In this document: positions 32,257-56,402 of the stretch, piece after piece
How the letters are laid out: every line of letters begins with the position of its first letter
Numbering within the stretch: the stretch's first letter is position 1
NCBI GenBank assembly: GCA_030704615.1
Contig: CM060731.1
Span: forward strand, 67,828,001-67,892,000
Source of the DNA: Takakia lepidozioides
Lineage: Eukaryota; Plantae; Bryophyta
DNA: 64,000 nt
Reading direction: 5' to 3'
The notes under the pieces: model-generated
Databases searched by the model: none
What the model was told of the DNA's origin: nothing
Seen by the model: the letters and a program-made list of their open reading frames with translations, nothing else
Position numbers and translations under genes: made by a program

Positions 32257-32896
32257 GTCGATTTGCAATTCAAAGAGGAGGCGGTGCTGATACAGGCTAA
32301 ACGTAAGGTTTCCTGGTGACAGAACCGTTTCCGACACGAAGCTACAGGAGGGTAATTCCATGGAGACTCGCCTCTGATTAGACATCCATTCGTACTCTCA
32401 TCCATCTGATTACACATCCATCGTACTCTCATCCATCTGATTACACATCCATCCTACTCTCATCCATCCATACCTACACACATTGATCCTAAATCCCACA
32501 AGTAGACGAACAGTCATGTCCATTAAATAATATTAAATTTCAAATTCAAACTTGGGTACGCATGTGCAACCATGCATGTGTTGGCTTCACTCTCACTATG
32601 GGCTCAGGTTATGTTCATGACCACATCTGACATCTGGCATGGATGCGTGCATGACCTACATGTATCATACATAAACGACATTCCATGGGGTGACGGATGG
32701 GTGGCGGGGGCGGTGCGCGGGGGGGCTGGGGGGTGGAGGGGGCGGCGGGGGATGGCGGGGATGGGGCGGCAGAGCAGGTGGCGGGCCGCGGCGACCGCGA
32801 GCCGCGCGGGAGCCGGAGGGGGGGGCGAGGGGAGGTGCCACGCAGGCAGGACCGAAGGGCTCACATTAAACTCCCGGGCCTTTTCTAGTGTGCGCC

Positions 32897-33792: not shown

Positions 33793-33813
33793 AAACCCTA
33801 AACCCTAAACCCT
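33793..33813 (+). promoter_or_regulatory. Telo-box-like element, (AAACCCT)3, upstream of the FAM136A-like gene
   Basis: aaaccctaaaccctaaaccct follows a CT-rich tract ~450 bp upstream of the ATG. Confidence 0.5.
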
Positions 33814-34257
33814 GGAAGGTCGGCCAGGGTGCGCGGTTTTTGTAACCTTTGCTTGCAGCAGCTTTGGAAATTTGTCAGTCTCTAGTACAACACAGGGATT
33901 CATTCGGCCGTATTTGAAAGAAATCCACTTGGGCTCGAAGAATTTAAAGGGTCAACGTACGTGTTACTTTGATTCAAGTGGACATCTTCTCTATTCTCTT
34001 TCTTGGTTGCGTTCCAGACCTGGATCTAAGCAAGTAAGTTTCAATGTCAAAGAGCTCCATCTGTGTTGTCTCGATAAATGCCGCGGCATTGTGTAATGGA
34101 GAATTATCGGAATCATGAGTTTGTTCTTTCTGTAATTCGTTGCAACCATCGAAAGCATTTCAAGGCTGTCAATAAATTGTTTGTTGCGTCTTTCCAGCGC
34201 TTGATTATCCGACGTGACGTTAGCCGAGGGTAAATCGATGCGTGAGGAAAAGAGACC

Positions 34258-34610
34258 ATGTCGGAAACATTGAACAAGCTGTCCCAGGATGTTAACGCTG
34301 CTGTCAACGAGGCGATGTCAGGTGTTCAAGACTATGTTAGCATCACGCTTCAGGTGGCCTCCTTAGTTGTATCTCTCTTTTGTCCTTTGGCGCCCAAGTG
34401 TTTTGTTATGGTTCAAAGGATCGCTTGTAGTTGTGTTTGTCTTCGCAAAGACATAAAGAGGGAGACACTTAAGAGACATCTTTGCGAGCTTATTTTTTAG
34501 GGTTTACGTAGATGCCGGACCTTCCATCGAGGTCCCTTATGGCAGATACAGCCTACTCCAGACATGAATGTGCAATCAACTGGCAAGTAAGGTAATTGTA
34601 AACTTCACTT

Positions 34611-34653
<43 letters not shown>

Positions 34654-35634
34654 GAGAAACCGACAGAGATATGAAGGAAGTTGCTCATCGCTATCTCTGT
34701 GCATGTTTTGGGAGGCAGAAAGAGTACTACAAGTGTGGGTACGAGTGCTTCAACCGGAATAAGGGGGAGATTCCAAGGTGCATTGAACGATGCAGCCTTC
34801 CTGTGCAAAGGGCCAGTGCGATTCTTGACAGTGAACTAAAGAAGTTTCAGGTTAGTTCCCTGGGTCTTTCTTATGTCTTTCTGTTGCTATGATTGACAAT
34901 GCTTTCCGCCGAAGTCATTGGTTGCTAATAGTCATCATCAAGTTTGTAACCAACTTGTCATCTGACTGTGTTTCACCCCTAATGTTATGCCAATTTTTAT
35001 ACTTGGTGACATGAGGCCCGGCATCTGACTATGGGGGAGGTAGGATTCCACCTATGATATAGCGAATGATATAACGAAGCCCAAAGTCACAAGGGTATCA
35101 TGGCATCTCTTTGTTGTGTCTTTTGGATGATCCAGTGCTTGACTGCTTGAAACTGCTTTTCAAGTGGCACTCATGAACCAACAATGCAGGTTTTGGTCAG
35201 CAATGTCCACATACCTTCTTAATGTTCTCTGTAGACCTCATGCATGCAGTAGAAGTTCTGGGTATTGTGAGCCTACAGACTCAGTGAATGGAACAACTGA
35301 GAGGAAATTCGCACTCAAGCTGCAATCAACAGGAGCTGTTTTTCTTGATTAAATTATTTTGGCTGTTGAGCTTGACATCTATTGACAGAGCAAAACACAC
35401 TTGAATTTGTATGTGCAGGATAGGTTGACTAGGAGCATGTTGGTGTGTCGCGATAGAATCGAAAGCACAGGGGGTTTTGTTGAAAGCGATGATGGGAAGA
35501 TAAGGGAGATGGAAACTTGTATGCAGGTTGCCGTCAGAGAGCAAATGAAATCTCTTCCCCAACTTGCAGACCATATCAAGACACAGATTACAAACAGCTC
35601 CCAACTTAATTTGCCACCGGAATTTCGTCGGTAA
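34258..35634 (+). CDS. FAM136A-like (DUF842) protein; exons 34258-34353, 34719-34850, 35419-35634 (147 aa)
   Basis: LQ|KEYYKCGYECF...CIERCSLPV...ELKKFQ|DRLTRSMLVCRD...METCM with the CX3C pattern; GT-AG phase-0 introns. Confidence 0.9.
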
Positions 35635-36145: not shown

Positions 36146-36306
36146 CATTCAAATGGGGGTCATGATTATGAGGCTGAGCTCCACCTGAACATTGTCATAG
36201 AGTCATAGCAAAGCATACATCCTCTGCAACTGTTCCTTTCTTCCAATACCCTCATCTCAATAAAAAGGCTAGAAAGACAAAATTACAATTCATTTCAATC
36301 AAATCA

Positions 36307-37379
36307 CTAGTCAAAAAGAGAGAATCCCATGTCATCGTCACTCTCCTCCTTCTCCTCTTCCTTCTTCTCTTCCTTCTTTTCTTCAGCAGGTGCAGCTGCC
36401 CCACCACCTGTGGATGCAGGGGCTCCAGCAGAAAACACAGCACCACCACCTCCACCTCCACCAACTATGACCTGCAGTTTGTCCACAGCCATCATTGTTC
36501 ACATCATTAGCTATGGTCGGTGAAGGGCAACCTAATTGATGACGGTCCCATTCATCGTAAAGAAATTCACCGGCGTGTCGTGAAAGATAAATTTAACAAC
36601 TCGTTGACACACTGCTCACTCTTGAGCCCGACCTTCCGCAGTGCCCAGATATCGTCAAGACTGAATCAACTGCGTCAGTCACAGTTCTGCTCTATTGAGC
36701 TCACAAACTAAAACTGTCGAGTGTTGATTACGAAAATCGACTGCACCCAAATCGGTGATCCAAAAACTCGGCTTGACATAGTCTTCCGAATTAATACCAC
36801 ATAAATTCAGACGTCCTTTCCATTATCTGGAGTTTGCTTCGAAACATGGTTTGGTCAATTCGGCCATTTAGACCTCGCCAACTCTTTACCATTATTGTTC
36901 TTCATATGCCTAGGCACAGTTCCTTGACAATGATACATTCGGAGGTTTCTCTAAAGCCTCAAGACACACAAACCGTAACAAGCATCAAGCCCTTTATCCA
37001 CATTGCAGACTACCACGATATGCAGAAGTCAAGCCAAAATTCCAAATTCACAAATAGAAAAAGCGATCAAAAAACTTTTTCCCAGGCGTTTATCTGCAGT
37101 CCAAGGAACAACATTTAAAACAAACAACATGAAAGAGTGGGATACATATTCACAAAGAGAAACAAAATGAATCACCTGGGCGACAGCGGATGTGGGAGTG
37201 ATAAGCGAGAAGGTAGAGGAAACAGCCCCTGAGCCTGCGGCCGTCAGCGCCAAGTTGGTCAGTTTCCGCTGAAGCTCCCATGTGGTAGCGGCACTCTCCT
37301 CCAGCTCAGATTGACCTGCATACTGCTTGGCTGTCCATGTGCCCGAAGCAAACCTGACCACGAACGTGAACACCGCCAT
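36307..37379 (-). CDS. RPP3: 60S acidic ribosomal protein P3; exons 37379-37176 and 36471-36307 (122 aa)
   Basis: N-terminus MAVFTFVVR...WTAKQ...[24 protein letters not shown]|VIVGGGGG, and the C-terminal [13 protein letters not shown]. (TA)n TATA-like tract at ~37513-37526. Confidence 0.95.
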
Positions 37380-38870
37380 CGCCGCTGCCCTGGAGCTCCT
37401 GCGAGAGTGTGTGCGCCTCTTCCTCCTTCGCCGATTAGGGCAAGACGATGCTGACCGGAAACTGGCTGTTAGCGGTTGGCACATGGGTGTGGGATGGAGG
37501 TTTTTCAGAGTCATATATATATATAACCGGATAGGTAACCGCTGGGTATTAGAGAGAAATTCAAATAACCGCCCAACACTGGTATTATCTCAACCCTATA
37601 GTAATTTTTTTAATGAATCATTATTTTAGACCTTATATTAATTTAAATTCCCTGATCACAACATAATGTACCCTTTATTACTTTTAAATATTTTCTAATT
37701 TTTATCTTTTCCGTATAAATTGCACCCTATATTTTTGTTGGAAATTTTGGAAGTGACTTCCCGGGGCATTTCATCCTAGCCTGTTTGTGTTTTTCTTTGC
37801 TTATGAGTGGTGTGAGCTTCGAGTTTGAGGCATTGAGGAGGAGTGGAAGGTGGTGAAAGATGTAGTTTGAGGGTAGCTTGACTAGAGCTTTTGGAGCGCT
37901 CTCGTTCTAAACCGTGCTTTGACGAGGTTCTCTTTCTCAAGAACCACCCTCTCCTTCTTTCACATGCACATGGCTTTTTCCGTGCTTTACAACGTCTCTC
38001 TGACATCACCCTCGCAGCGCAATTTTGTGGATTGATATCCGTAGCCATAGAATAAGAATTCAATTAGCTGGGAACGCAGCAATCCGAAAGCTTTCAGTCC
38101 AATCACGTGTTTCTTGACGATCGATGAATGTGTTTGTGTGTGAGAGAGAGACATTGCTCACAGCTCTTGAGCTAGCCACGGGTCCATGGAAATTTTTGTA
38201 CACTGATCAGAGCCTCAATCGAGTATATTTGGAGTTTTGTCTTGAGCATTTGTCTTTATTTATTTCAGATTCATGACTTGGAAAGAAAACTGGGTGAGCT
38301 GTGGCAGACCAAGGGCCTTTTTTATTGTGCGGTAAGAACAAGTCTCACTTCTAACATTCATGGAAAAAATATGAGGCCATCATCTTTGAGGGCCTTGTGA
38401 CAATAGGTTACTCAGCAATAGCTATGGTGGCTTCATTACAAGTTCATTGAGGAATTCAGTGATCGTCTTCGCAAATTGGGGGCTGCCTTGACAAACTTGG
38501 TTGGAAGGAAAAGAGGCTTCCATGAAGCAAAAATCGAGAGAGTGGGCAGTCAATACAAAACCTTTCTATACGAGGCGGCCGGGTTTAATTACCATGGCCT
38601 TATAGCAAGACTCAGGGCTAGACATGGGCTCCCTCCAGACTTGCCTACTTAGACAGTGCTGCTGGTAAGAACATCGAAAACCATCTCTTGTGCACTATTC
38701 CACCTAGCCCAAATTTCCTACACCTCTTATCTGGGTTTGACTCTACCATGATGACTATTTTTGGGAGATTGCTAGGATTAGGAGCTCTGGAGGGTGCTCT
38801 GGAACTTTTGCTCACAGCAGCAAGCCACCCTACCCATCTCTTCCGATGGTATGGGTCTTTGTGTGACCGT

Positions 38871-39360
38871 CACTACAGCCCCGTCAGCCGTCCTCGGTAG
38901 TTGGGCGTTGGTTACGCCAGCGATCGCTTAATGATTTCTCTGCGACCATCGTCCCATCCTCACTGCTGCAAATAGGGGGGTTTAGCAACGTCAGCCGCGA
39001 TTCCACGCCTGCGCGACGTTGAGCATGCGACGCCCACCCCACGGTGCATTTTGCGACGCCACAGCGTCGCATAACAGCGCCGGGGCAGCGTTTGCCACGT
39101 CGTAGAGTCGCACCACAACGCCCAGGCGTCGCCCCCCTGCGTTGGGGCCAGCCAGCGACGCCGGGATGTCGCAAGGTGGCATGAAGGGCAAGAGGCAACC
39201 CTTCTTTGCGACGCCCGGCCGTGGCAAGGTGAGGAACCCCCCTGCCACGCCCGGCCATCGCATGGTGGCTTGAAGGGCGAAAAGGCCTCTGCGACGGCCG
39301 GGCGTCGCAATGGGGGATGTTGCGACGGGGTTTTTGGCTTGCGACGGTGGGGGGTCGCCA
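38871..39360. mobile_element. CACTA (En/Spm) terminus with subterminal repeats
   Basis: Begins CACTACAGCCCC, followed by many GCGACG/CGTCGC repeats in both orientations. A TnpD fragment lies 1 kb inward. The partner TIR was not found in the window. Confidence 0.7.
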
Positions 39361-40077
39361 GAGGGGGGGGGGGGGGGGGGGGGGGTGTTCTTTGAGTACT
39401 TAAGGGGCAGGGAGAGGGGGTGGGGATGGGGGATGGGACTCTAGGGGGGGAGGGGAGGGGAGAACCTCTCTGTTTTTCTTTCTTTGCCCCCCCTCTCTCT
39501 CTCTCCCTCTCTCTCTTGGTTGTTAATAGATTTTGTTTGCAAGATGGTTGTCCCATCCAACATTTTCAAAGACTTCCACTAATGGGAAAATGCGGATTAG
39601 TATTGTGAAGATAGTTTTCAAGGTCAGCTCAAAAACACAAATAGTTCCTTCCTCAAGGCACTAGTGGAGTGCAAATTGTGCAGAATCTTGATAGTCCAGC
39701 TCTTGACTGTAAGGGTGCTCCCCTGCGCATTGAGGATTCCACACTTTGCCAGTGGATGGCAACCACACCACCGATGGAGTTCTCATACTCCACATCTTGG
39801 AAGCCCGCATCGGCTACCATGGCTGCAAACTACAGGTCATTGGGTGCGACAGAGAGTTAAACATTGACTATGATACCTAGACAATATCATATGGGAGGAG
39901 TAGACACAAAACTTATATGGCATTGATAAATCATAGAAATAAGCTATGCATGTACAATCAATCGAAGGGATGGGTACAGTTCTGTGCGAGAATTATTACG
40001 TAGCTTTGATTACGTGTCTAATCAATTTGAACATCATCATCCGGAGCTTCTTCATCCTCATCAAGCTGCAAGTCTTC

Positions 40078-41060
40078 TTAGTCATCGGAGTCATCGTCAT
40101 AAATGGGTCGGCCCTCAAAAGGCACCTCCGAATCATCCTCCACCTCGTTTTCAATGGTCGTGTCTTCATCTCCTTCTCCAACATCCGTATTTTCTGGAGC
40201 TTCATCATATATGGTCCGGGATGCATTCTCCGGGGCGTCATCATCCTCTTCTATCCCTCTACTCAATCTCCAACATCAGCATCATTATGACCAGTCTCTC
40301 CCTCCACCGCAATTGCCTCACCCCATGAAGATCCAAGACCATGATAGATACGTCTTCCTCTTGGCTGAGCATGCACAACCACCTTCCAATTTCCCCCTCT
40401 TGTTTTATCATCGGAGAAAAAAACTTGCTCCATGTCTGAAGACCATGCAAAAGGCTCATCGGATGGACGATGAGTAGGGTTGAGCCTATTTGCATTGACG
40501 CGCATGAAACCACAATCATCTCGCACTAGTGTTGTTGAGGGCCCCACAAGATGTGGCTGGAACCACCTTCCTTTGAAGAGAAGAGGTCGGTACGTTGTAT
40601 ACTGAAGTTGGAGTATGCTCTCAAGCTCTCCAATGTACTCAAGTTTGCTCATAGCAGGTTGTGTATCTCTCTTGCCCCACATGGAGTCTTGCCAATATGT
40701 GGCACACAAGCCAGAATCAAACATTGTTTTGCGCTTCATGTCAAGAGCACGAATGCGGAAATAACGACCGTGATCCCAAATCGTCGTATATGAGGGGGGG
40801 GTGCTATTCCGTGAGCCTGGAGGCGTGAGCCCAAGAAACCGTGAGCCCAGCACAGGCTCACGCCACGTCAGCATACATACAGGGCCTATTTCCGCGGGTG
40901 TCACCTATTTCCGCGGGTTGATCAGCCATTTCCCGGGAATGCAGAGTGGATATGTTACATCCATTGTATCCATTGCATCCATGCAGACGTTATCAACATA
41001 CCAAGCCCTCACAAGTTTATGTGGGTACGTCGTGAGGAGGTGCACACTGACATGATCTAA
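40078..41060 (-). pseudogene. CACTA TnpD/Tnp2 transposase C-terminal fragment (DUF4216-like) with an acidic tail
   Basis: HGRYFRI...DSGL...YIGELESILQLQY...LFKGRWF...DDCGF..VN...DEPFAW...EQVFFSDD...WKVVV...PRG. Confidence 0.85.
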
Positions 41061-41084
41061 AGCGGAACCCTGCGAAATCTTTCT

Positions 41085-41735
41085 TACTCACCACCCTTGC
41101 GAACATGCCAGGTATGTGCGGGAGCATCATGGATGCTCATTAGATTTGAGAATGCCTCACAGCTCTTTGATGAGGTGGACTTCACCGTGATGGATTCACC
41201 AACCATTCTTCTAGCAGGAATGGTTTGGAGACCAACGACCAAATGATGCGAGAATGTTGTACACGAACCAAAGTCGTTTGTTTGTTTTTGCAATGCACTC
41301 AAGTCTGTGAGGTCCAGAAAACACTAAATAGATTGAAGGAACAATCTGGGCAGTCCATGCGACCCCCATCTCCAACAATAGTTTGTTCCCATTAATGTGC
41401 ATTCCACGCACACATTGCAAACAGGACAACAAGGACACACAACCATCCCATTTCAAATTTGGCCCCGAATAAAACCAAAAGAAAACTTCATATCAAGTGT
41501 CACAGTCATCAGAATCAGTCTCGACCTCCTGTGCTATGTCATCCACAAAGATTCTGGCCCCAACACCAGCAGCAGCATGTGCAGAGCAGTGTACGGGTGA
41601 ATTGAAGCCAGCGCCCTACCTTTAAAATTCTATTTGCGATCTGCCAGAGAAAGGCAGCCAACTTTGCAGGTCTGGTTTTGACCCATATGCCTTTCCAGAT
41701 TATTTGCCATCGCTCGTTTTGAAATCCATAGGCTC
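41085..41735 (-). mobile_element. Degenerate 3' fragment of a LINE (zf-RVT region)
   Basis: RWQIIWKGIWVKTRPAKLAAFLWQIANRILKVG matches the zf-RVT consensus W..IW....P.K...FLW......L.vg; stops and frameshifts follow. Confidence 0.55.
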
Positions 41736-42038
41736 TTCTACCACGGCCGTCGATGGGTGGACTCCGAGTGCCATGAACGGTCATGCTTGTTGCGAGTGCC
41801 TCCGCATAGACAAGTAGCACGCAAGACCGAGGAGGACTGGAAAGAAGTCCAAATAGGTGTGATAGCCCTGGAGGGCAAGTGGAAGCATGCGGACTCCTGC
41901 ACATGTCGACAAAAACCCATTCAGAACACAATATGCAATACACAAGTCCAACGAAGAGGATGTCTGCCATGTGAACTTTGCCTCAAGAACAGTGATTCTC
42001 GATATTGAAACAACAATGCAAGCATCCACAAGTTGAAC

Positions 42039-45000
42039 TTACTCACAGGCAAAGTCGGAGTCCAGCTCCTTGTCGGAAGTCTCCTCTGTATCAATATCAG
42101 CGGGACGGGGCTTCGGAAGGACTTGAGAAGTGTGTCCACCCAAACCCATCAGGAGGTTCTTATAAATCTCAGCATCCCCTTCAATCCCAAAGAGATGTCG
42201 CGCACTGGCCTTGCAAGCGTGGTACGAAGCACCTGCAGTGGAATAGAATGAAGGAAGCAGACATTGAAGACACATATGGAACGGTGGGAAGTACTGAAAG
42301 TGCAAGCTCAATCAAACCTCATGAAATCTGAATGTTGAAGAGACGAACCTGTGCCCATTGACAAATCCAGAACTCTGGCATCTGTGTAGGTGCAGCACTC
42401 CACAATCGTTTGAATGAAAGCCGGGCTCCTCTCCCTCGCCCCTCTCCAAGGAACCCCATTCCCCCTTCACAAGCAGACGTTGTTGTCGACGTAGTTGTGG
42501 TGCATGTCATCCGTGGGAGGATCTGTCCTGTCGTCTATGAACTTGCCCCCATGAGTGATGGCGAACTCCGAAATGCCGGCCGGAGTCGTTGGTGGATGCA
42601 CTCGGACGAGACAAATAGCTTCAAACAAACGAGTCTGCGAACAACACATCCAGAAGGAACTAAGAAGCTTCAAAAATCAGGCCCCTACATATGAGTTCGA
42701 GCGACCTACACAACTCCATCCGAGAACCACCAAGAAGAGGAAGAAGAAGGCAAATTTACCATCTGTCCCGGACGATCCCCCTTCGTAAGGTACATGCTGT
42801 TCACACAATTCCATGTCTTCAGGACTCTCTATGAGCACCAAAACACCTGCATCGGACAGGAAAAAATTGCAAAAGGAGAAAACCCACCGCCAGTAGCGCT
42901 CATCAAAAGCATTCCAACCCAGACAAGCACCCGATGGAGGGACATCCGGGACTGCCAACCCATCAGGGATGTCCAAGATTATGAGTTCGGCTGCATATTG
43001 CTTCTCCTCCCCGTTCACCCAAGATTTGGTCATTTTAGCCTGCAAACAAAATTACAATGGAATACTCAAGAGGATTGAAACGATCCATGCCCACTACAGA
43101 GAAGAAGCAAAAGAGAACACGCACCGTGCCGAGGAACTCTACAATCCTCTCCCACACTGGTGATGGCTCGCCCTTGTAATCAGATTTCTTGGACTCCATC
43201 ATGGCAAGGAATCCAACGTTGGCCATCTCCAACCTGGTAGGGCGAATGACCCTCGTTGGATGTTCCACTGCATGGTACGGGTCCTTGGGATCAACCACCC
43301 CCTTGTTCTTTCTCACGGATCCCCTACCATGCGGTGGAGTCTGCTGGACATGCACCACTGGGCCAATATCTGCAACACTTCCCTGCCCTTGTGCCACCTT
43401 CCCTCTACCCCTTCCTTTCCCCACAACACCAACAACATCTTTTCCCTTTGCCTTTCTACCTCTACCCGGGGTATCCTGAGCGGGAGGCTCCTTCTCTGCA
43501 AGAGTCCTCAAATTTCGTTCATGAATGTCGAGGTCGGCTGCTGCGGCAGTGGCTGCAATTCGCTCATTCTCTCTCCTCAAAGACCCCTCCGGAGCTGGGG
43601 TCTCAGAAGGAGGGCAATCCAAATATCAACCACAAGAAGAAAGATGGTCTGGGCCCCAGTCATGCAAGATCCCAGTAGTAAACATGGTCTGATTGCCAGC
43701 AGGGACAAGCCAGAGGTCCACGAAATCTGGATGTTTGTCCAAGCAATTCTCTTCCATGAGAACAAACTTTATGTACCTGCAGGAACAGAGACAGCCTCAT
43801 TATGCAATGCAATTATTGTCTCTCAGCTTTTCCATCACACCAGGAAGACCCCCTTAAACTGTATGCGTCACAGTACATTGCAACCACAGCACACTAAGTA
43901 GCCTAAACGGCCAGGGTGTGCACCTGTAAAGGCATCGTTTCCAGGCTTCCTCTCCTTTTTCTTGCTGGTCAAGGTCATGTGTTCGACTGATGCCACCCTC
44001 CTTGCTGAACTCTCTAAAGAAACAAGAGTGCCACACTGTGGCTCTCCATTTCCTCATGTATGCTTCAAAGGAGACCTTCGGTGCTGTCATAGTGATGCCA
44101 TAGTCAGCCAGCTGAGTATGCAGAACCGACCGTGCCCTTTCTTCCAACTGCAAAACAATTCAAATGCAAGAATGAACCCAAAAAAAATCATAGCGAATGT
44201 GAGAGGCAATGGAAAGAGAAGGACAGGAAAAGAGAAAAGAAAGTGACACAGGAAAGGACATCACACCTGGCTCCAGTAAGTGGCCTTGTGAAGCCATGTG
44301 TCCAGCACATTGTCACTGACAGAAATGACACGCTGGGTCTTCTTCTCTTTCTCCGGCCTGGGGAACATGTGGGTATCCCTAACTGTGGGATCGGAGTTCC
44401 ATATCTGCAGCCACTTCACCTTCTGTTCTGAAGACACAACGGCGGTAGACAACCTGTGTAACTTCTCCTGGGCCATCTCTAGCTTGCCTGGCTTATTATA
44501 ATGGTTTTTTATCTCCAGGAGAAACTGCGATCCGAATGATGGGTCGGCAATTCTCAACTGCTTCACAAAAGCACTCATTATAGTCCTTCTTGTAGCGGTC
44601 ATCTCTTTCTGGATGTGACTCTCAACCCCCTTTGCTGTCCTTCTCTCCTCAGGGGTTGACCTGTAGTATTCCAGTTTGCCACGCTCCCCTGCATCTGCAA
44701 TGTCTTGCTGCAAGGGAATGCACGAGAGTTGCATCAACCCAAGGGCAAGGGAAACAAACAGAAACAAACATGTGGAAGCAGGAATATGGAAAGGGCAGAT
44801 GAAGGAAGATGTATCTCACCGTGTACATGTACTCCATGAAAGCCTCACGTGTCAACGAGTACCACGTTTCCGATGTCTTGGAGCTTTCGCACTTCTTGTA
44901 CGTCTCTGCTGAAAGGATGGTCTTGAAGTTGGTCAAGGGCATCTGCCCGATCCTTTGTATCCTATACAGTGTGTGAACCAGACTCGTTTTGACATGCGAT

Positions 45001-45703
45001 GTCTCCGTTCCTCTGCAGAATGATATCTGAAAGTCAGAATGAAATTCAAGGACTTTAATCAAAGAACCACGGAACTACAAGTGGAACATGTAGAATGAGA
45101 AACCAACCTGTTCACATCATTCATTGCCGTCAAAAGACCCATCATGTTCCCCTCATAATCCAGCACCATCGATCGAACAGAGTAATGCCACTCTTCCTCC
45201 TGTGAGTGCAGCCTCCCAATAACAGCCATCCATGCAAGCAACCGGTGGTTCCCATCCCAAACGTGAAACATCTTCCCCGAGAATGCCTGGGTGGAAGGTT
45301 TCCTGGAGAGAAGAAGTTCGAAGGATTCGTTCACCTGTCTCCAAATAGGATCCCAGGAGTCCATGATTGACTCATCCACAAGGAGCTCATTGCCTGTGGA
45401 ATCCTTTGTACAAACGTAAAACACTACGGATCCATCCAAATACCCATCAACAAACTCGGCCTCTAGCTTGAGAATGTCCTTGATGAGGGGTGGTTGAACA
45501 ACGGGCATGGAAACCATCCTACATAGGGGAATCTTCAACCTCCCACCCGGGGCAAGCATACTTTGCACCACAAGCTGAGAGTTTACCTTCTGACCCCCCA
45601 GCATCTCAGCGGCTTTGCTTTCATAGAACTCATCGTCAACATCAACAATGATCTCTTTCCCCAGCCCCGAAGGGATCTCCTCCGCCACACTTTGCATCTT
45701 CTC
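42039..45703 (-). pseudogene. Spliced ParB/Srx-like + beta-class (N4C/N6A) DNA methyltransferase fusion gene, disrupted; exons 45703-45108, 45012-44820, 44707-44267, 44147-43924, 43776-43125, 43039-42760, 42634-42349, 42232-42039
   Basis: ParB-like FHVWDGNHRLLAW. Motif-IV-like ELIILDIPDG followed by L..aGvlvli. SAM-binding block ERSPAFIQTIVECCT...RVLDLSMGTG|ASYHACKASARHLFGIEGD. Seven GT-AG introns. In-frame TGA at 43626-43628 and 42467-42469 and a frameshift near 42825. Confidence 0.8.
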
Positions 45704-45794
45704 CTGCAGGGTTGTCCATTCAAATTGATATAAGAGTGAGGCATAAGACGATGGTGTTTGAGCATGGCAGACAGGTCATGTGTGGAAGAAAATG

Positions 45795-48700
45795 TGAGCT
45801 CAAACAGTGTGCGTTGACGCACACTGTTTGAGCTGCAAGATAAGTAATCATTGAACCTCAAAGACATGCCACATAAGTGTTCATTGAACCTCAATGAGAA
45901 GCCCTTAGTGGCCGATTTTCAGATGAAAAAAAAAAGAAAATGTGAGCTCAAACAGTGTGCGTTGACGCACACTGTTTGGGCTGCAAGGTAAGTGTTCATT
46001 GAACCTCAGAGACATGCCAGGTAAGTGTTCATTGAACCTCAAAGAGAAGCCCTTAGTGGCCGATTTCAGATGACAAATGCAATGACAAGGTGACCTCAAA
46101 CAGTGTGCGATGACGCACACTGTTTGAGCTGCCAGGTAAGTGTTCATTGAACCTCCGAGACATGCCCTTTATTGCCGAATTTCACAGGGAAAAAACAGTG
46201 ACAAGGTCTGCTCAAACAGTGTGCGGCAACGCACACTGTTTGAGCTGCCAGATAAGTGTTCATCGATCCTCAGAGACATGCCCTATGTGGCCGATTTTCA
46301 AATGAAAAAGGCAATGATAAGGGTAGCTCAAACAGTGTGCAGCAACACACACTGTTTTGAGCTGCCAGGTAATTGATGATTGATCCTCAAATACAAACCC
46401 TATGTTGCCGATTTTCAAATGACAAAGGCAATGACATGGTGAGCTCAAACAATGTGCGTTGACGCACACTGTTTGAGCTGCCAGGTAAGTGTTCATTGAA
46501 CCTCCGAGACATGCCCTGTATTGCCGAATTTCACAGGGAAAAAACAGTGACAAGGTGTGCTCAAACAATGTGCGGCAACGCACACTGTTTGAGCTGCCAG
46601 GTAATTGATCATTGATCCTCAAATACAAACCCTATGTTGCCGATTTTCAGATGACAAAGGCAATGACATGGTGAGCTCAAACAGTGTGCGTTGACGCACA
46701 CTGTTTGAGCTGCCAGGTAAGTGTTCATTGAACCTCCGAGACATGCCCTGTATTGCCGAATTTCACAGGGAAAAAACAGTGACAAGGTGTCCTCAAACAG
46801 TGTGCGGCATCGCACAGTGTTTGAGCTGCCAGGTAATTGACGATTGATCCTCAAATACAAACCCTATGTTGCCGATTTTCAGATAACAAAGGCAATGACA
46901 TGGTGAGCTCAAACAGTGTGCGTTGACGCACATTTTTTGAGCTGCCAGGTAAGTGTTCATTGAACCTCCGAGACATGCCCTGTACTGCCGAATTTCACAG
47001 GGAAAAAACAGTGACAAGGTGTCCTCAAACAGTGTGCGGCATCGCACACTGTTTGAGCTGCCAGGTAATTGATGATTGATCCTCAAATACAAACCCTATG
47101 TTGCCGATTTTCAGATAACAAAGGCAATGATATGGTGAGCTCAAACAGTGTGCGTTGACGCACACTGTTTGAGCTGCCTGGTAACTGTTCATTGAACCTC
47201 CGAGACATGCCCTGTATTGCCGAATTTCACAGGGAAAAAAAGTGACAAGGTGTGCTCAAAGAATGTGCGGCAACGCACACTGTTTGAGCTGCCAGGTAAG
47301 TGTTCATTGAACCTTCGAGACATGATTGCCAAATTTCACAGGAAAAAAACAGTGACAAGGTGTGCTCAAAGAGTGTGCGACAACGCACACTGTTTGAGCT
47401 CCCAGGTAATTGATGATTGATCCTCAAATACAAACCATATGTTGCCGATTTTTAGATGACAAAGGCAATGACATGGTGAGCTCAAACAGTGTGCGTTGAC
47501 GCACACTGTTTGAGCTCCCAGGTAAGTGTTCATTGAACCTCCGAGACATGCCCTGTATTGCCGAATTTCACAGGGAAAAAACAGTGACAAGGTGTCCTCA
47601 AACAGTGTGTGGCAACTCACACTGTTTGAGCTGCCAGGTAATTGATGATTGATCCTCAAATACAAACCCTATGTTGCCGATTTTCAGATGACAAAAGCAA
47701 TGACATGGTGAGCTCAAACAGTGTGCGTTGACGCACACTGTTTGAGCTGCCAGGTAAGTGTTCATTGAACCTCCGAGACATGCCCTGTATTGCCGAATTT
47801 CACAGGGAAAAAATAGTGACAAGGTGTGCTCAAACAATGTGCGGCAACGCACACTATTTGAGCTGCCAGGTAATTGATGATTGATCCTCAAATACAAACC
47901 TTATGTTGCCGATTTTCAGATGACGAAGACAATGACATGGTGAGCTCAAACAATGTGCGTTTGACGCACACTGTTTGAGCTGCCAGGTAAGTGTTCATTG
48001 AACCTCCGAGACATGCCCTGTATTGCCGAATTTCACAGGGAAAAAACAATGACAAGGTGTGCTCAAACAGTGTGCGGCAACGTACACTGTTTAAGCTACC
48101 AGGTAATTGATGATTGATCCTCAAATACAAACCCTATGTTGCCGGTTTTTAGATGACAAAGGCAATGACATGGTGAGCTCAAACAGTGTGCGTTCACGCA
48201 CACTGTTTGAGCTGCCAGGTAAGTGTTCATTGAACCTTTGGGACATGCCCTGTATTGCCAAATTTCACAAGGAAAAAACAGTGACATGGTGTGCTCGAAG
48301 AATGTGCGGCAACGCACACTGTTTGAGCTGCCACGTAATTGATGATTGATCCTCAAATACAAACCCTATGTTGCCGATTTTCAGATGACAAAGGCAATGA
48401 CATGGTGAGCTCAAACAGTGTGCGTTGACGCACACTGTTTGAGCTGCCAGGTAAGTGTTCATTGAACCTCCGAGACATGCCCTGTATTGCCGAATTTCAC
48501 AGGGAAAAAACAGTGACAAGGTGTCCTCAAACAGTGTACGGCATCGCACACTGTTTGAGCTGCCAGGTAATTGATGATTGATCCTCAAATACAAACCCTA
48601 TGTTGCCGATTTTCAGATATCAAAGGCAATGACATGGTGAGCTCAAACAGTGTGCGTTGACGCACACTGTCTGAGCTGCCAGGTAAGTGTTCATTGAACC

Positions 48701-49207
48701 TCCGAGACATGCCCTGTATTGCCGAATTTCACAAGGAAAAAATAGTTACAAGGTGTGCTCAAAGAATGTGCGGCAACGCACACTGTTTGAGCTGCCACGT
48801 AATTGATGATTGATCCTCAAATACAAACCCTATGTTGCCGATTTCAGATGACAAAGGCAATGACATGGTGAGCTCAAACAATGTGCATTTGACGCACACT
48901 GTTTGAGCTGCCAGGTAAGTGTTCATTGAACCTCCGAGACATGCCCTGTATTGCCGAATTTCACAGGGAAAAAACAGTGACAAGGTGTCCTCAAACAGTG
49001 TGCGGCAACTCACACTGTTTGAGCTGCTAGGTAATTGATGATTGATCCTCAAATACAAACCCTATGTTGCCGATTTTCAGATGACAAAAGCAATGACATG
49101 GTGAGCTCAAACAGTGTGCGTTGATGCACACTGTTTGAGCTGCCAGGTATGTGTTCATTGAACCTCCGAGACATGCCCTGTATTGCCGAATTTCATAGGG
49201 AAAAAAC
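45795..49207. repeat. Tandem array of ~29 x 116-bp monomers (232-bp A/B dimers), each with a 36-40-bp palindrome
   Basis: Consensus hairpin GCTCAAACAGTGTGCG-(TTGA/GCAA)-CGCACACTGTTTGAGC with alternating linkers; the ORF track shows the 232-bp period. Confidence 0.97.
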
Positions 49208-49536
49208 TGTCAAGTTATTTTACCACTAGTGTGAAACTAGCTAGGAAATAGCTAGCTTTTACATATTGACATTTGGGATTGGCCCAAGTGTCAATCCAGG
49301 GGTCAAGGCATATTTAGGCCCTGGAGTGGTTATCTTCACGGCAAGTGCGGGAGGCTCATCTTTCTCGAGTTGAGCCTCACCGCGCCTAGCTATGGCGCCG
49401 TAGTGTGGATTCCCCATGGCGTGGGGTGCACTTGGCTTGACTTGTATTTGAGTGATGAGGTTATATATGCATGAGTTTATGCTTCAGCTTTGTGAGCTCG
49501 CATGAGCTCGTGCTTGTATTCTTCCTCTTTATCACT
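49208..49536 (+). mobile_element. 329-bp 5' fragment of the LTR found at 24038-24366
   Basis: Near-identical to the reverse complement of 24038-24366 and starts with TG. Confidence 0.92.
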
Positions 49537-49539
49537 ATT

Positions 49540-50080
49540 GTGTGGACTAGTGACTGCCATAGTGGGCAGCGTAGTGGCAGCCTAGTGACTGACTAGTTGT
49601 AGCCTAGTGGTTGGCTTAGTGGCTGGACTAGTGGTAGACTAGTGGTATACTAGTGTGTGGTGTGCACATGTGTTGTGTGGTTTTGGACAGCGATGTAGTT
49701 GTGTAGCGATATGTATGCGCACGACACATTGTCCAATAAGAACTTTCGATTGCCAAACATGGAAATGCGACACCGCATTTCCAAAACAGACATCGTTGAT
49801 TGTCCAATTCCAGACCCTTCGATGGAAATGCGGCACCGCATTCCATTGTCCAATAAGAAAATTTGATGACGGACATGGACAAGCATTAGCGATTGGACAT
49901 GCTTGGACAATTCAAGGTCCAATATGGAAATGCGGTGCCGCATTTCCAATTCGAAGTATGGTAATGCCATGTTAAGAAATGAAATGTCGTACAACATATC
50001 CGTTACGACCACAACGGAGGAAAGGGAGCTGCCAGAAATCGCTGCATGGTGAAAAATGAAATGCGGTCCCGAATTTCCGA
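49540..50080. repeat. Cluster of CTAGTG short repeats and dispersed 22-bp palindromes GGAAATGCGGCACCGCATTTCC
   Basis: About 10 (c)tagtg units at 49547-49655; palindrome copies at 49761, 49824, 49926 and 50058, with a related copy at ~51195. Confidence 0.75.
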
Positions 50081-50324
50081 GCTTCAGCATGTACATGTTT
50101 CCTTTTACTCATACATGGATTTCCTTCACCTCAGGACTCTGATATCGCTAACTCTGGTATATTCATGTGGACAGACACATTGTAGAAATGAGACCACAAA
50201 TTGTAAACAGTGGGCCAATTACGGCAGTTCTTGAACACATTGAAACAGAGCACACAGAAATGAGGTACGATGGGTTGTTTTATTGATCGAAACGGTGTCT
50301 CACATTTAGCAACTCCAGACAAAT

Positions 50325-50990
50325 CTAAGCCCTTCCTCCTTCTACATGGGCGTCACCAAGTCGATAGAACTTCGATAGCCTCAAAACAAGCTCATTACTG
50401 ATGCGGCACCTGGAGGTAAACTGCAATGCGGTCGTTCTGGTGCCCTTGATGGAGCTGATGACAATGTCATGCCCATCAATGATACCACCATCATATATTG
50501 ACAAGGTCACTGTGGGCCTCATGTGCCCGTGCGATTTGTCTTTGCAACTCAGCCGAATGTCTCCATACACTAGAAGAGCGGAGTGAACTCCACGAATATA
50601 GTTTTCCTTGGTGCTGTCCTCCCTGGTCCACTGGCAGCAGTTCCAGCGCCAAAGCGAGGCCGTGCGTGATCTGTCCGACATCCCATTCCACCTTGGTATA
50701 TCGAGGTCAACAATTTTCAGGACCCACGGACCACATTGACCCTCGCCCTCACCTCGCTCAAAGCGGTAATAGCCCTCAAAATACTCCATTGCGCGCAAAG
50801 ACTCCCGCTTGATTCCACAAGCGTCAGTGAAAACAGAGAGCCAGACAATGATGTCTCCTGATTCTGGTTTGAACTAGCATAATCGTGGCCATGATAAGGG
50901 CAGTTAGCAGGATTTCGGCGGCACGGCATCCTTGAAAAAGATTAGCGGAGTACGCTTAATGACAGAGGCAACAGCGCGGTGGCTGAAAGA
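50325..50990 (-). pseudogene. Frameshifted paralogue of the unknown 225-aa protein at 51316-51993
   Basis: Shares RMPC.RN...CPY.G.DYA, GDI.vW, EY..G.Y.FERG, PW.L.I.D.D.P, RWNCCQWT, YGDIR and LSI.DGG.I.GHDIV; frameshift near 50860. Confidence 0.8.
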
Positions 50991-51315
50991 AGTTCAAGCA
51001 AACGCTACAATTCCTCACAAACACTCCAGGGCACGTTTAAATTTCCCCCCTACATGAACCTGCACGGATGAAGATTGGCTGCTCCATGAATATAGCTGTT
51101 TCAGTTTCCTTCCCTGCCATGCAAACTATGGGCAATAAGTGCCAGGTGGGCCTATAGCCACTCGAAACGACGAAGTCCATCCCCCCTTCGATGTAAATTC
51201 GGCGCCGAATTTCCATCCGGGGGATGGACTTCGGTGGCAGATTTCAAACTACCCGTGGATGAGAAAGAGGTATCGGTTCATCCACCGCTAGTGTGATGAA
51301 CATGTTACACGATGA

Positions 51316-51993
51316 TTGGTGGGTACGTGGGACCCAGATGCTCCATTATTGGAGCCCGCACTGCTCTTCCGCTTCCCATCATTTCGAAAATCTAAGGGCT
51401 TCGTTGCTGTCCGCAAGGTCATTGTCATCGGCATCAAAGACGTCCTCAGGTCCTCCTTTGCAAGGATGCCGTGCTTCCGAAACCGGGACGACTGCCCTTA
51501 TGGAGGCTTTGATTATGCAATGTATTCGGCCACATCGGGAGACATCGTTATCTGGTACACAGTTTACACAGAAGATACTAGTTCGAATGTGGAAACATTG
51601 TCCGCTTTTGAGTATATCCCAGGCCACTACACCTTCGAGCGGGGTGACGATCTTGGTCTGAGGAGTCCATGGCTCCTGCGCATCCTTGATTCCGATTTTC
51701 CCAGCTACGACGGGCACCCATGCAGAAGAATGCGCACTGCTATGTTGTTGCGGTGGAACTGCTGCCAGTGGACATGGGTGGACTCTATCGGAGAGACGTA
51801 TACTCTTGAAGGAGTGCGCTCCTCTTCTCCATTGTATGGGGACATTCGCATTGGTGTGGACGACGAAAACGTGAAGCTTTCCATATTCGATGGTGGTATG
51901 ATTGAAGGGCACGACATTGTGGTGAACATCAATAGGGGCGGTACAACGGCTGCAATCCAGTTTACCTGGAGGAGCCCGATGATCATGAGCTAG
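51316..51993 (+). CDS. Intronless hypothetical protein (225 aa), family not recognised
   Basis: Open ORF whose amino-acid motifs are conserved in the divergent paralogue, implying past coding constraint. The listed start codon is not ATG, so the true start is uncertain. Confidence 0.6.
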   Translation: MVGTWDPDAPLLEPALLFRFPSFRKSKGFVAVRKVIVIGIKDVLRSSFARMPCFRNRDDCPYGGFDYAMYSATSGDIVIWYTVYTEDTSSNVETLSAFEYIPGHYTFERGDDLGLRSPWLLRILDSDFPSYDGHPCRRMRTAMLLRWNCCQWTWVDSIGETYTLEGVRSSSPLYGDIRIGVDDENVKLSIFDGGMIEGHDIVVNINRGGTTAAIQFTWRSPMIMS

Positions 51994-54189
51994 TTTTCAG
52001 AGCAGTCGAAGTCCCATTGACAACGTGACTTGTATTCAGAAGGCACAGGGCTAAAGATTTGTTTGCACAATCAGCACAGTAGACGTGCTTCAAATGCAAT
52101 TCATGTGGATCAATAAAAACCCCATACTGCCCTCTTTTGTTCTATTTTGTATCCATCGTTCCCAGAATGCATCATTCCTCATTTCGTTTGGGATTGGAAG
52201 TGTGGGTGGATTTTGCAAGTGGCTGGTAGGCTGAAATGGGCCCCCATTGTACACAGCAGTACCACCCTACCATTCGCGAAACATTGCCTTTCAATATGTA
52301 ATTCTAAAAAACATTGCCGAACCTCCTTCATCGGGAGGTCATTCTCCCCCTATGACCGTGACACCCTAAACCCTATTCCCGCGGACACTCATTTCCGGAA
52401 AATAGTCCTGCTCATGTTTTTTTCGACACTTACGACTCTGCTCATGGCTCATGCCGCTCATGGCTCATGGCTCATGAAATAGCAGCCCCACACACACACA
52501 CACATACATAATAGTGCAAGGTTGGCGGTGGAATTACATTTATTTGTTTCTTAGTCCCTCTGGGAACAACCACCCACCAGTTAGTGTACTAGGGTATATC
52601 TTCTCACTTATGCACATTTCACACCACCCGCTATCTATAAGTTCTAATTGCACACACCTCTTTTATAAACACATTATCTGAAATTGTTCTTTTCAATCTA
52701 TAACTCCCAGTGTTAAAGCCTCTAAAGTCAAATTTATCTACCACCCTTGAAGAGGTGGTGTGAGAACCTTAAAAATTATCATTAAGATTTTGTGACCACA
52801 AAAGTTTCATTCAATGTATTCTTGGCCATTCCATAAGGTACCCCAGTAATTAGAGATGTTTTGAACCAAACATGTGTGGACGTTATCCACATGCAATATC
52901 TCTTAAAATAAAATTCACAATAAGGATTTAGTTTTTTTTTCCAGCCAAAAATATTTTTTATCTCTAATTAATTTTATTTTCCTAATTTATTGATTAAATA
53001 AATTAGGACCCGGATCCGAACCCGTGAACACGATAATATTTTCCAACAACTACCCGGACCCGGACCCGGACTTGGTACCAAAAAAAATCCGAACCCGGAC
53101 TCGGCGGGTTCCTTAAAAAGGCACTACCCGCACAACGTTGTAATCCAATAGGTACATAGGTCAGAGCCGAGTATGTACCAGGGTATATACACAAGCATCA
53201 GACACCTTGCGCTTGGGACCTGCGCCCAAACCCTAGAGATCCAAGCGCACACTAAGAACTAATGCAAATGAAAAGCGCAACCCAAGTTGGAAATAAAGAC
53301 GATCGCCAAGATGTAAATGACAAACTGCACAGCAAAGCCAGGGTAGTACGGTTAGTGAATCACGATGGCCAGACACATCCCAAAATAGAGACAAGCGGGA
53401 AGTGGAGGGGACACAATTAATGAGGAATGCTGCGAAATTGCAGTGTCTCTTAACTATTACTAGCCATCTCACACCTCTAATCCGACTATGTAGGGCTTTT
53501 GGGGGGCCTCCTTGAGCACTAACCGCCTATGCAGGTCTTGGGGTGGGTAAAAGACAAGGTTGGTCTTGGCGGGCAGGGCTGGACACACGAGCCACCAACA
53601 CCTCAGCTGGTATATAAGAAAGTTGTGGAAATACTCTCGCACTGGGGTAGAACATCATGCCACTGAGGGGCAATTGAGAGAGATCTTAGGCCTGCTTTGT
53701 GTTGAGTACTTGGTAAGTTTACCTTTTCCTCCTTGCGTGCAGCGTTGACCGAAGCACCTTCGTGCTCTCAACTACCATTTTTTGTTTAGAAGGCATGTCA
53801 GTTTGATTTTGGGTTGGAAAGAGAGGAGGGAGGAAGGTGACAAGCAAGGCTTTAGTGAGGCGGTGACCGAAGTGCTAAGGGAAGATGTCTGGCTAGATGA
53901 GGACAGTAAAACAATACAGGCCCTTTAGCTCGGGAAAAACGGTCGAGACCTGCGGGCAATCAGAATTCGCTTCCTCATCGGGCATATGTGAGGAGAAGAT
54001 GTGATTTGGGGGGGCAATGTGCCAGCTACCGCACACTTGCGTGCCAGTCTCGACACTTGTATTGCTGCTGCCACTAAACCCTGCAGGTCTCCTTTGAGTG
54101 ATGTTACTCGGAATTTTTTTGGGCTATGTTCATGTCGTGGCTCTTGTGGGTGCAAGTACTTTAGAACTTGAAAATTCTGTACGTAGGGA

Positions 54190-55290
54190 TGTCGAGATGG
54201 TTGCTATGGATGGATATGAGGGCGATTCATGTGAGGAAGAGGACTGGGAAAATGATGGTGACTGTGAGGAGGCGGAAGATGTTCCAAACGCATCTTTTGC
54301 TAGTTTGTTCGCTAGTCCTGGAAAATGGGACTGCACAAAAACTACTTTCTGTAGTGATAGAGAGTCGTTTGGTGGGCCTGCACCTGGGCCTTGTCTGGGC
54401 AACATGACATAGACCTCTCCAATTGTGCGTTCTTTTTTCAAATTGTTCTGGTTGAGTACAATCCTTGATCAAATTTGTCGAGAGACAAATCTGTATGTTG
54501 TCGAGAATATAGCCATGTGGAACTCGAGGTGGGCCAATGTGGAGGCCATTGATTGTGGCAAAGTTGGAAGCTTGGATTGGCTTGTGTTTGTTCATGAGGA
54601 TAAAGAGGCTGCCCAACAGCCGCTACTACTAGCAGCAAAGTGAGGTATTTTTTGCATGCCCTGTCATTATAAAGGTTATGACCAACGATCGGTATGAAGC
54701 TATTTTGCGGTGCTTGCATTTGGTGGACAACTTAACCCTGGTGTCTGATCGTACTAGTACTGCATTCGACAAGATTGGCAAGGTGAGGTGGGCTTGTGAG
54801 GATATTGCAAGTGCTTGCAAATGTCATTGGAATTTGAACAAATTGCTAACTGTGGATGAAATCATGATAAGGTATAAGGGAAAATATTGTGCCATACGCC
54901 AATATATGCCCAAAAAGCCAATGAAATGGGGCATAAAAGTCTGGGCCCTTGCAGATGCAGTCAGTAGCTATATGTACGATTTGATGTCTCTGTGGCAAGA
55001 ACGGTGGCACCCAGGGCATGAGGGAGAAGTCTGGCAAAGATGAAGGATATGATGTGGTCACTCATCTAGTCTCTGGATTGCATGGGCTTGGGCATGTGGT
55101 GGTAACTGACAATTACTTCACCTCACCAGAGTTGCTATACAATATGGCTTTGCTTGGGACATGGTCACTGGTATTGTCAGGCTGAATAGAAAGGGATTGC
55201 CCCCCTCATTGACTTGCTTGAAGAAATGCAAGACAGCCAAGCAAGGAGACACTTGGTGGCGAATGCATACTAGTCGGCAGGTCGCTGCTT
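54190..55290 (+). pseudogene. piggyBac (PGBD4-like, DDE_Tnp_1_7) transposase relic
   Basis: FFKLFW...ICRETNLY; RYEAILRCLHL; KIGKVR; TVDEIMIRYKG...RQYMPKKP.KWGIKVW.LAD; HVVVTDNYFTS; TGIVRLNRKGLP. Frameshifted, and the C-terminus is missing. Confidence 0.9.
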
Positions 55291-56266
55291 GCCTGGTGGG
55301 AATAGAAATTTTTGTTAATTTATCTCTTACCTACATAAGTGGCCCCTAAGTGTCTCTCACGCCTTGTAAGTTTTGTGAGCATTCATTGTTTCGAATAATA
55401 ATAAGGACAATAAATTATACTGCAGGGCTACGATGATAAGGATACACAATGTTATGTTACGTTCAAGAATATCATGTTGTTGTCACAAAAAGCGGCTTAA
55501 ACACACCAACTATTATCAACATCCAGCCCAATTGTTAGGGCACAAGATCGCCTTACAAATTATAGTTGGTGGGATCAAAGCCACATATGTGTATGTCAGA
55601 TGTTACCCATCATAACCAAATCCAACTATAAAAGGGCATTCGGGTCAACTATTTACTTGATGTGTGGCTACATAGGGACTTTTGAGACCTTGGGGGAGGT
55701 TCTGGGCAACCGCATTGCCCCATTTATAGTCGGTAGAAAGTATTAACCTTCCAAACAAAATGCATTATGCCTTCAGGTAAAATGTCATATTCCTTTGGGG
55801 TGAAGGGCATGAGTCTTAGTCTCTTCCTCTTCACAAACAACAACCCTAAACTTGACTTTTCAGAATGTGGATTCACTAGTAGTGGCTTTAATACTAAATC
55901 ACTGAGTGTCACTTGGGTGATATTGGGTTCAAATCAATTATGAACAATCTTTTCATGGTTTTTTGTCTTAAGGGCGGGATCAAGACACTGAATGGGTTGC
56001 TCCCATGGTGGGCCAAGACCCTTGAGGTGGCTAAGGAAGCCCTTCAACCGGAATGCGGTGGGGCTTCAAGTGGTGGTCATGGGCCATAGATTAGGGGGAA
56101 CATAGTGTGGATGGTATACGACTCATCAAGAGCTTAGGGGCTCTATGTGCATGGGAATCATAGAGTCTTGGGATTCACCACAGCCACAAAGGGTGGGCCG
56201 AGACTCACCATAGCTCTCATAGGGAGTTGAGGGTTCTTTTGGTGGTGCGCCATAACTTAAGTAGAA

Positions 56267-56402
56267 TAAGGTGAACGTGTTGCCGAAGCAAGTGTAACTT
56301 ATGGTGTCACTTGACCCAGAAGGGCTACTGCCTTCCAGTAGGAAGGTGGACACCTTTGTAACAACCAACAGGGTGGTTTGAACCCACAACCACTCGTAAG
56401 AG
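56267..56402 (-). mobile_element. 5'-truncated copy of the tRNA-derived SINE
   Basis: 56301-56393 closely matches 1230-1323, including the B-box. Bracketed by the 12-bp direct repeat acttaagtagaa (56255-56266 and 56403-56414). Confidence 0.75.

Follow-up and report, generated by a model that had tools for sequence, protein, structure and literature searches.

The stretch of DNA analyzed here (hereafter the window) comprises 64,000 nucleotides of Takakia lepidozioides (Bryophyta; assembly GCA_030704615.1, contig CM060731.1, positions 67,828,001 to 67,892,000). On its minus strand we found what is quite likely a nine-exon pseudogene of a Mutator-like element, with a ParB/Srx domain, a middle region and a beta-class amino-methyltransferase (MTase) joined in a single chain. 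Full-length relatives of this gene are found in Riccia sorocarpa, in Adiantum, and in moss-like metagenome contigs. The gene is accessory cargo of the GCM-MULE-SWIM family of Mutator-like elements in non-seed plants (mosses, liverworts, and ferns).

Structure and decay of the gene

The first-pass annotation, made from the sequence alone, had described eight exons with canonical GT-AG junctions. These eight exons and the seven GT-AG introns between them (85-147 nt, most of them T-rich) were borne out on the minus strand, but the count was short by one, as the presumed stop codon at 42041-42039 is a part of the splice donor GA|GTAAGT. A 146-nt intron (42042-41897) leads from it to a ninth exon, 41896-41493. 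The motifs of this exon, SPP..h.YAE.LA and FVDDIAQE followed by an acidic tail, also occur in the Riccia protein P0184 and, with the identical preceding intron, in the homologous loci L001, L024, and L094. Moreover, the intron donor and acceptor positions recur in L093 (introns 1-4) and in L094, and the window exons have collinear matches in homologous loci at 30-61% identity; hence, the exon model is not a product of chance. Homology and domain searches were run exon by exon, and the exons were joined, with stops kept, only for the frame check. The model is as follows.

45108-45697, minus strand: exon 1, domain of predicted ParB/Srx fold with the DGNHR motif (GT-AG model, homologues, fold model)
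44820-45012, minus strand: exon 2, middle region (GT-AG model, homologues)
44267-44707, minus strand: exon 3, middle region (GT-AG model, homologues)
43924-44147, minus strand: exon 4, middle region (GT-AG model, homologues)
43125-43776, minus strand: exon 5, premature TGA at 43628 and a low-complexity linker (GT-AG model, homologues)
42760-43039, minus strand: exon 6, region of MTase motif IV (DIPD), deletion/frameshift near 42830 (GT-AG model, sibling contigs, L094)
42349-42634, minus strand: exon 7, carrying MTase motifs X and I (WRGARERS...VLDLSMGT) and a premature TGA at 42469 (hhalign, 98%)
42043-42232, minus strand: exon 8, remainder of the S-adenosylmethionine (SAM)-binding block (GIE), ending at the GA|GTAAGT donor (introns of homologues)
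41493-41896, minus strand: exon 9, conserved C-terminal tail with a zf-RVT-like insertion (L001, L024, and L094, Riccia P0184, sibling contigs)

The motifs are located at 45256-45242 (DGNHR), 42985-42959 (LIILDIPDG), 42433 (ERSP), 42373-42349 (VLDLSMGTG), and 42188 (GIE). The 5' end is uncertain, as there may be an acceptor just before 45703, so that an upstream exon is possible.

The window copy is dead on four counts: two stops, one deletion, and one insertion. Both TGA codons reported initially are in frame, starting at 43628 in exon 5 and at 42469 in exon 7; the two had been suggested to derive from TGG/CGA, and homologues have Trp at the position of the former. The single frameshift of the first-pass annotation could be located near 42830, although it is actually an internal deletion in exon 6, about 55-60 nt relative to siblings as judged from L094, with the loose ends at 42829/42831 in the alignment of public contigs. 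The lesion that had been missed is a zf-RVT-like insertion of about 163 nt (Pfam E 0.04), which interrupts exon 9 at about 41569-41733 and is skipped by sibling contigs (joints 41568-41734). This insert is a LINE-type fragment (long interspersed nuclear element) that most sibling contigs lack.

The expectation that siblings exist elsewhere also held. Public sequences were placed on 5,981 bases of the window, with 9380 contigs aligned in one run; decayed copies occur as well. The summed contig depth is not a copy number, but it points to many copies in the genome, which we infer to be hundreds or more. Near-intact copies are found in the L001/L009 family and in Riccia, where P0188 is a full-length annotated protein. 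One RNA-like contig, from a paralogue, has an alignment limited to the span of exon 7 (42347-42636), which may be a weak sign of splicing and expression. No relative of the gene was found in viral contigs.

Predicted folds of the encoded protein

Exon 1 has 523 relatives, and its model, folded with 49 sequences, reached a pLDDT (predicted local distance difference test) of 94.5. The top Foldseek and VIA matches of this model were all ParB, Noc, Srx (sulfiredoxin), KorB, PadC, or SbnI; the best structural match had Z 7.5 and root-mean-square deviation 2.7 with 89 aligned, and the Foldseek E-values were above 0.001. The G-N-H-R..A-W motif, a nucleotide motif of the GxxRxxA type, is conserved among the relatives of exon 1. 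The model is consistent with a ParB/Srx fold, the matches being unanimous and the scores middling, and so agrees with the initial assignment of the DGNHR motif to a domain of this type. Scans of single window exons against Pfam, PHROG, and PADLOC yielded neither ParB nor MTase matches, and no PDB match was obtained for the middle region. A match of the ParB profile to eL24 was treated as a chance one and rejected. The ParB tree is poorly resolved, and the order of events cannot be read from it.

The profile of the C-terminal domain matched only beta-class amino-MTases, collinearly over about 210 positions (M1.HpyAVI, E 2e-4; CcrM, 6e-4). The model of the Riccia protein P0189 retrieved CcrM at E 1.5e-9, and MboIIA, BceJIV, CcrM, and PvuII at Z 13-14. 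In intact relatives, motif IV precedes motifs X-I in a Rossmann MTase fold, and window exons 6 and 7 belong to the family MTase profile. As had been proposed from the motif order, the C-terminal part is thus predicted, from profiles and models of the relatives, to have the fold of beta-class amino-MTases. In Pfam, the family scored 23.7-24.8 with N6_N4_Mtase, under the gathering cut-off of 26.7. In UniRef, Riccia P0186, P0188, and P0189 are labelled trimethylguanosine synthase despite matching beta-class DNA MTases.

The catalytic motif is unusual. The LIILDIPDG segment was originally regarded as being of the catalytic type, and its position is right, but the annotation did not remark that the base-stacking aromatic residue is missing nearly family-wide. 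In solved beta-MTases, the aromatic residue of motif IV stacks on the target base (PMC10406627). We did not find the (D/N/S)PP(Y/F/W) motif in the window, which has DIPD; in almost all family members motif IV reads D-h-P-(E/D/T/S/I/R), with DVPE, DLPE, DLPT, and DMPS elsewhere, and Phe was observed only in Adiantum P0143. Motif I has the form DLxx[GS]TG (DLSMGTG or DLTAGTG) without Phe of FxGxG, while GxG and the acidic residue of GIE/ALE are retained.

Active DNA methylation by family members is nearly an even question, with the balance tilted slightly to the negative. With the same gene and the same carrier, the MTase could instead be a pseudo-enzyme that would bind DNA, SAM, or a flipped base as a scaffold, a reader, or a steric shield, similar to the Dam-like domain of DIRS retrotransposons, whose MTase domains are likely inactive (PMC4738411). 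The almost family-wide D-h-P-x form of motif IV and the altered motif I agree with this. On the other hand, conservation from liverwort to fern, under purifying selection, extends to Asp and Pro as well as to the GxG turn and the acidic residue that binds ribose, and the second position of motif IV supplies only a main-chain carbonyl. Between family copies, dN/dS is 0.11-0.12 for the MTase, 0.07 for ParB, and 0.21 for the transposase core; as the MTase value is lower than that of the transposase core, simple decay of the MTase is disfavored. Overall, a pseudo-enzyme is a realistic possibility to which we give appreciably less than even weight.

The probable Mutator-like carrier and the CACTA remnants

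Three loci of one assembly, L001, L009, and L010, are copies of an element of about 13 kb at different sites, with terminal inverted repeats (TIRs) of about 50 bp; the two complete copies, L001 and L009, are flanked by 10-bp target site duplications (TSDs). The L001-type element encodes, opposite the ParB-MTase gene, a divergently transcribed protein of 1229 aa, and nearly all Atlas neighbours of this protein that have a Pfam family are MULE/SWIM transposases. Of the 19 loci with 4 kb or more of upstream DNA, 14 have a divergent head-to-head transposase of Mutator-like elements (MULE), Riccia L091 and Adiantum L092 among them; this set consists of moss-like contigs, Riccia, and Adiantum, and some of its loci are near-copies or redundant. 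By contrast, none of the 16 homologous loci with enough downstream DNA had a DUF4216 match near the gene.

The intron-rich structure and the full-length annotated protein P0188 would also suit a domesticated host gene, such as Marchantia DN4MT1, standing beside transposon debris by chance. Given the very high multiplicity (9380 contigs), the decayed copies, the TIR- and TSD-bounded copies at different sites, and the lack of the TSPPY motif, we find this scarcely credible.

L094 is the closest full-length relative and shares with the window both the intron positions and the TIR. Its TIR core was found in the window at exactly two sites, 40802 (18/20) and, on the opposite strand, 52484 (17/20), with at most 16/20 in shuffled sequences. 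The ends at 40796 and 52490 align with each other over about 120 bp (score 54, compared to the maximum of 47 in 1931 random windows), and the public contig X11-13 diverges from the window sequence at 40795. The distance from the stop codon to the TIR is 697 bp in the window, 737 bp in L001, and 771 bp in L094. The unit 40796-52490 holds the gene, a 3.4-kb array, a piece of a long terminal repeat (LTR), a second palindrome type, and two open reading frames (ORFs) with the WNCC motif. As it has neither a transposase nor a TSD, the unit is non-autonomous and rearranged. The features of the unit and of the adjacent CACTA remnants are as follows.

38871-39346, plus strand: CACTA-type end, marked by CACTAC (38871) or CACTGC (38961) and by a cluster of TTGCGACG subterminal motifs (unpaired in the window)
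40010-40795, minus strand: C-terminal remnant of CACTA TnpD beyond the Mutator terminus, with an acidic tail and DUF4216 (about 40610-40377; Pfam E 1.8e-7)
40796-40917, plus strand: Mutator-family terminus with TGCTATT..GTGAGC repeats, 697 bp past the stop (18/20 to the L094 TIR core, contig divergence at 40795)
45786-49207, no strand: tandem array, 116-bp period (232-bp dimer), a palindrome of about 38 bp per unit; candidate cognate binding sites (repeat analysis)
49208-49689, no strand: piece of an LTR directly next to the array, with a tentative right boundary and no TSD (98.5% identity over 332 bp to 24038-24369, inverted)
49760-49948, no strand: second palindrome type in three copies, GGAAATGCGG..CCGCATTTCC (sequence reading)
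50325-50798, minus strand: WNCC-motif ORF, paralog 1, inside the Mutator ends (ORF comparison)
51316-51993, plus strand: WNCC-motif ORF, paralog 2, inside the Mutator ends (ORF comparison)
52378-52490, minus strand: related Mutator-family terminus, inverted; an imperfect partner, no TSD (end-to-end alignment score 54)

The WNCC ORFs are arranged head-to-head, are 64% identical at the DNA level, and have no Pfam or PHROG match; possibly, they are further Mutator cargo. The TIR pair 13723/32896 was rejected as the carrier of the gene, as it belongs to a separate Mutator element that excludes the gene. Similarly, the 16/16 inverted CACTAG match 24343/49231 was rejected as a CACTA TIR, as it lies inside the 332-bp LTR piece.

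The idea that the gene is transposon cargo is supported by the homologues in TIR/10-bp-TSD elements with MULE transposases, and it has a red-algal precedent that the first-pass annotation lacked. The carrier named there, a CACTA element, is not supported in that form, since the Mutator terminus at 40796 separates the gene from the DUF4216 remnant, and the homologues ride with MULE transposases. The neighbouring TnpD fragment is real as a C-terminal DUF4216 remnant, but the start of its ORF is the Mutator terminus: in ORF 40904-40263, TIR DNA (the first ~36 codons) happens to be fused to an interior part of tnpD. In a motif search of the window we found neither other TnpD domains (Transposase_21, DUF4218) nor TnpA, and no homologues were retrieved with the DUF4216 ORF as the query. 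Paired CACTA/CACTG TIRs with a 3-bp TSD enclosing the gene were not found in the window, which has one end only. As the DUF4216 remnant begins exactly at the Mutator terminus, the most likely history is insertion of the Mutator end into a tnpD gene, with subsequent loss or rearrangement of the far flank.

A composite formed by nesting of the Mutator end in tnpD could then have spread as a non-autonomous CACTA element, making the gene CACTA cargo in this genome. The summed contig depth (about 35,000-174,000; X1) is unbroken from 39860 to 44840, across the 40795 junction and both parts, a CACTA-type end with subterminal motifs is only 1.9 kb away, and accessory genes of red algae pass between Plavaka/CACTA and Mutator elements. 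Still, below 39860 and short of the CACTA end, the depth drops about 100-fold, and one contig diverges precisely at 40795, with no contig seen to bridge the two parts. Neither a second CACTA end nor upstream tnpD is present in the window, and none of the homologues from outside this genome is close to DUF4216; the two families may simply both be abundant. We consider spread as a CACTA composite rather unlikely.

Several observations nevertheless weigh against a pseudogene of this domain composition carried by a Mutator-like element. In nearly all members the motifs lack the aromatic residue (motif IV) and Phe (motif I), sequence profiles do not pick up ParB, and the Z-scores of the ParB matches are middling. 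No transposase was found in the unit 40796-52490, nor a TSD when its flanks were read; its two ends are only about 65% alike and may belong to two family members joined at the LTR. The equally high depth on both sides of 40795 would fit a CACTA-derived composite amplified as a unit. Finally, the contig matching exon 7 comes from a paralogue, and to call it RNA is guesswork.

Palindrome arrays, proposed function, and other features

Palindrome arrays, of a sequence that varies between clades, are present near the gene in L001, L029, L043, L091, and L096; the array core and a starred branch of the tree are common to L001 and L096. This clade pattern could be explained by shared ancestry alone. 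In L001, a palindrome array with the GGATCC core and a period of 117 bp occupies 11403-12482, in intron 2 of the ParB-MTase gene. The period is close to the 116 bp of the window array, although the sequences are unrelated, and in sequence the window array resembles none of the arrays at other loci.

The protein family resembles in its setting the VANDAL Mutator-like elements of Arabidopsis, in which the accessory protein VANC targets tandem motifs of its own element against silencing. VANC is the only proven self-targeting case of transposon anti-silencing. The protein probably marks or shields its element from host silencing. In intact members, ParB and the middle region would load on the palindrome array of the element, as ParB does on parS, possibly in a nucleotide-dependent manner. 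The loaded protein would bring the SAM-binding MTase domain onto the element DNA, where it would either write an amino-methyl mark other than 5-methylcytosine (5mC), N6-methyladenine (6mA) being favored by Asp of motif IV, or occlude host CG/CHG methylation. It would thus act as a VANC-type, sequence-specific anti-silencing helper of its own element family, countering 5mC silencing by the host. Unlike VANC, which has no ParB or MTase fold and induces hypomethylation, the window family has both folds, and its function is a prediction.

The protein could also be a transposition helper, a ParB-type clamp pairing or compacting arrays and ends into a transpososome in a MURB-like role. The constant head-to-head pairing with the transposase around the arrays and the strongest constraint on ParB (dN/dS 0.07) would suit this role, but it leaves the retention of a full SAM-binding MTase fold unexplained, and in red algae the partners are chromatin-modifying folds, a 2OG oxygenase for ParB and SET for the methylase. 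We regard such a role as improbable. Marking or shielding of the element can be extended to a wider scenario, in which Mutator elements since early land plants have combined parS/ParB-like targeting with an active amino-MTase of a non-canonical site, placing 6mA, N4-methylcytosine (4mC), or another mark on family-specific arrays against silencing, and have also jumped into a CACTA lineage here; taken as a whole, this is doubtful.

The closest precedent comes from red algae, where an N6A-methylase-SET gene and a ParB-2OG gene are found beside inverted-repeat arrays in Plavaka (EnSpm/CACTA) and Mutator elements, and self-modification has been proposed (bioRxiv 10.1101/2025.02.11.637652). The window family resembles Plavaka PAG2/PAG3 of Bostrychia and Chondrus in that transposon accessory genes combine a PF01555 N6A-methylase, a ParB-like domain, and tandem inverted-repeat arrays. 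It differs in that methylase-SET and ParB-2OG are separate genes there, whereas land plants have one nine-exon ParB-MTase gene, head-to-head with a GCM-MULE-SWIM transposase; the comparison is one of architecture, not of direct homology. The architecture of the PAG1-3 cassettes was not found in Riccia P0188, which has no SET or 2OG domain.

With the bacterial N6_N4_Mtase enzymes CcrM, M1.HpyAVI, M.RsrI, M.MboIIA, and M.PvuII the family shares the fold and the order of motifs, IV before X-I, but not the aromatic residue of motif IV or Phe of motif I, and its gene is a spliced eukaryotic one. Like Marchantia MpDN4MT1 and bdelloid N4CMT, it represents a eukaryotic beta-class amino-MTase of prokaryotic type; unlike it, those are host genes with an intact SPPY motif (TSPPY in DN4MT1), proven 4mC activity, and no ParB fusion. 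ParB is linked to adenine MTases on mobile DNA in the ParB-Tls loci of phages and in algal N6A MTases fused to ParB as well, although these are of other MTase groups or are ParB-HTH (helix-turn-helix) fusions; ParB-linked and DIRS-borne adenine MTases have been listed, with few in land plants (Iyer et al., PMC4738411). We found no land-plant single-chain ParB-MTase of Mutator elements in the searchable literature, subscription papers being outside its scope.

If active, the family would be a transposon-encoded source of sequence-targeted non-5mC DNA methylation in bryophytes and ferns, bearing on the disputed origin of 6mA and 4mC in plants and on transposon resistance to silencing. Near-intact copies with defined TIRs, TSDs, and arrays (the L001/L009 family, Riccia P0188) make the proposal directly testable.

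The only match in bacterial genomes, L096 (CADCWO010000058.1) in a cyanobacterial metagenome-assembled genome, was rejected as a bacterial donor, as it has introns and groups with the plant locus L095. This contig, carrying an intron-containing plant gene and an array, is likely moss contamination. Such contamination and the trimethylguanosine synthase labels in UniRef call for caution in using annotations of these genes.

Other parts of the window contain further mobile elements and host genes. The separate Mutator-like element at 13723-32896 has 89% identical TIRs, a 9-bp TSD with one mismatch, and transposase fragments; nested in it are a Ty3/gypsy element at 24549-31513 with 91% identical LTRs and an LTR retroelement (~17.7-24.4 kb) that contains a long tandem array rich in CACAG. 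At 52528-58931, inverted repeats (77%, 400 bp) surround a decayed piggyBac-like transposase (DDE_Tnp_1_7, E 6e-19, 54678-55043). The host genes, identified by eye at 2956-6895, 33800-35400, and 36300-37514, are a PP2C (PTC7-like) phosphatase, a FAM136-like gene, an acidic ribosomal P-protein-like gene, and a small conserved plant gene. An intact intronless ORF of 217 aa at 59951-60604, with no significant Pfam match, lies in AT-rich DNA and has a signal-peptide-like start; possibly, it encodes a horizontally acquired secreted protein.

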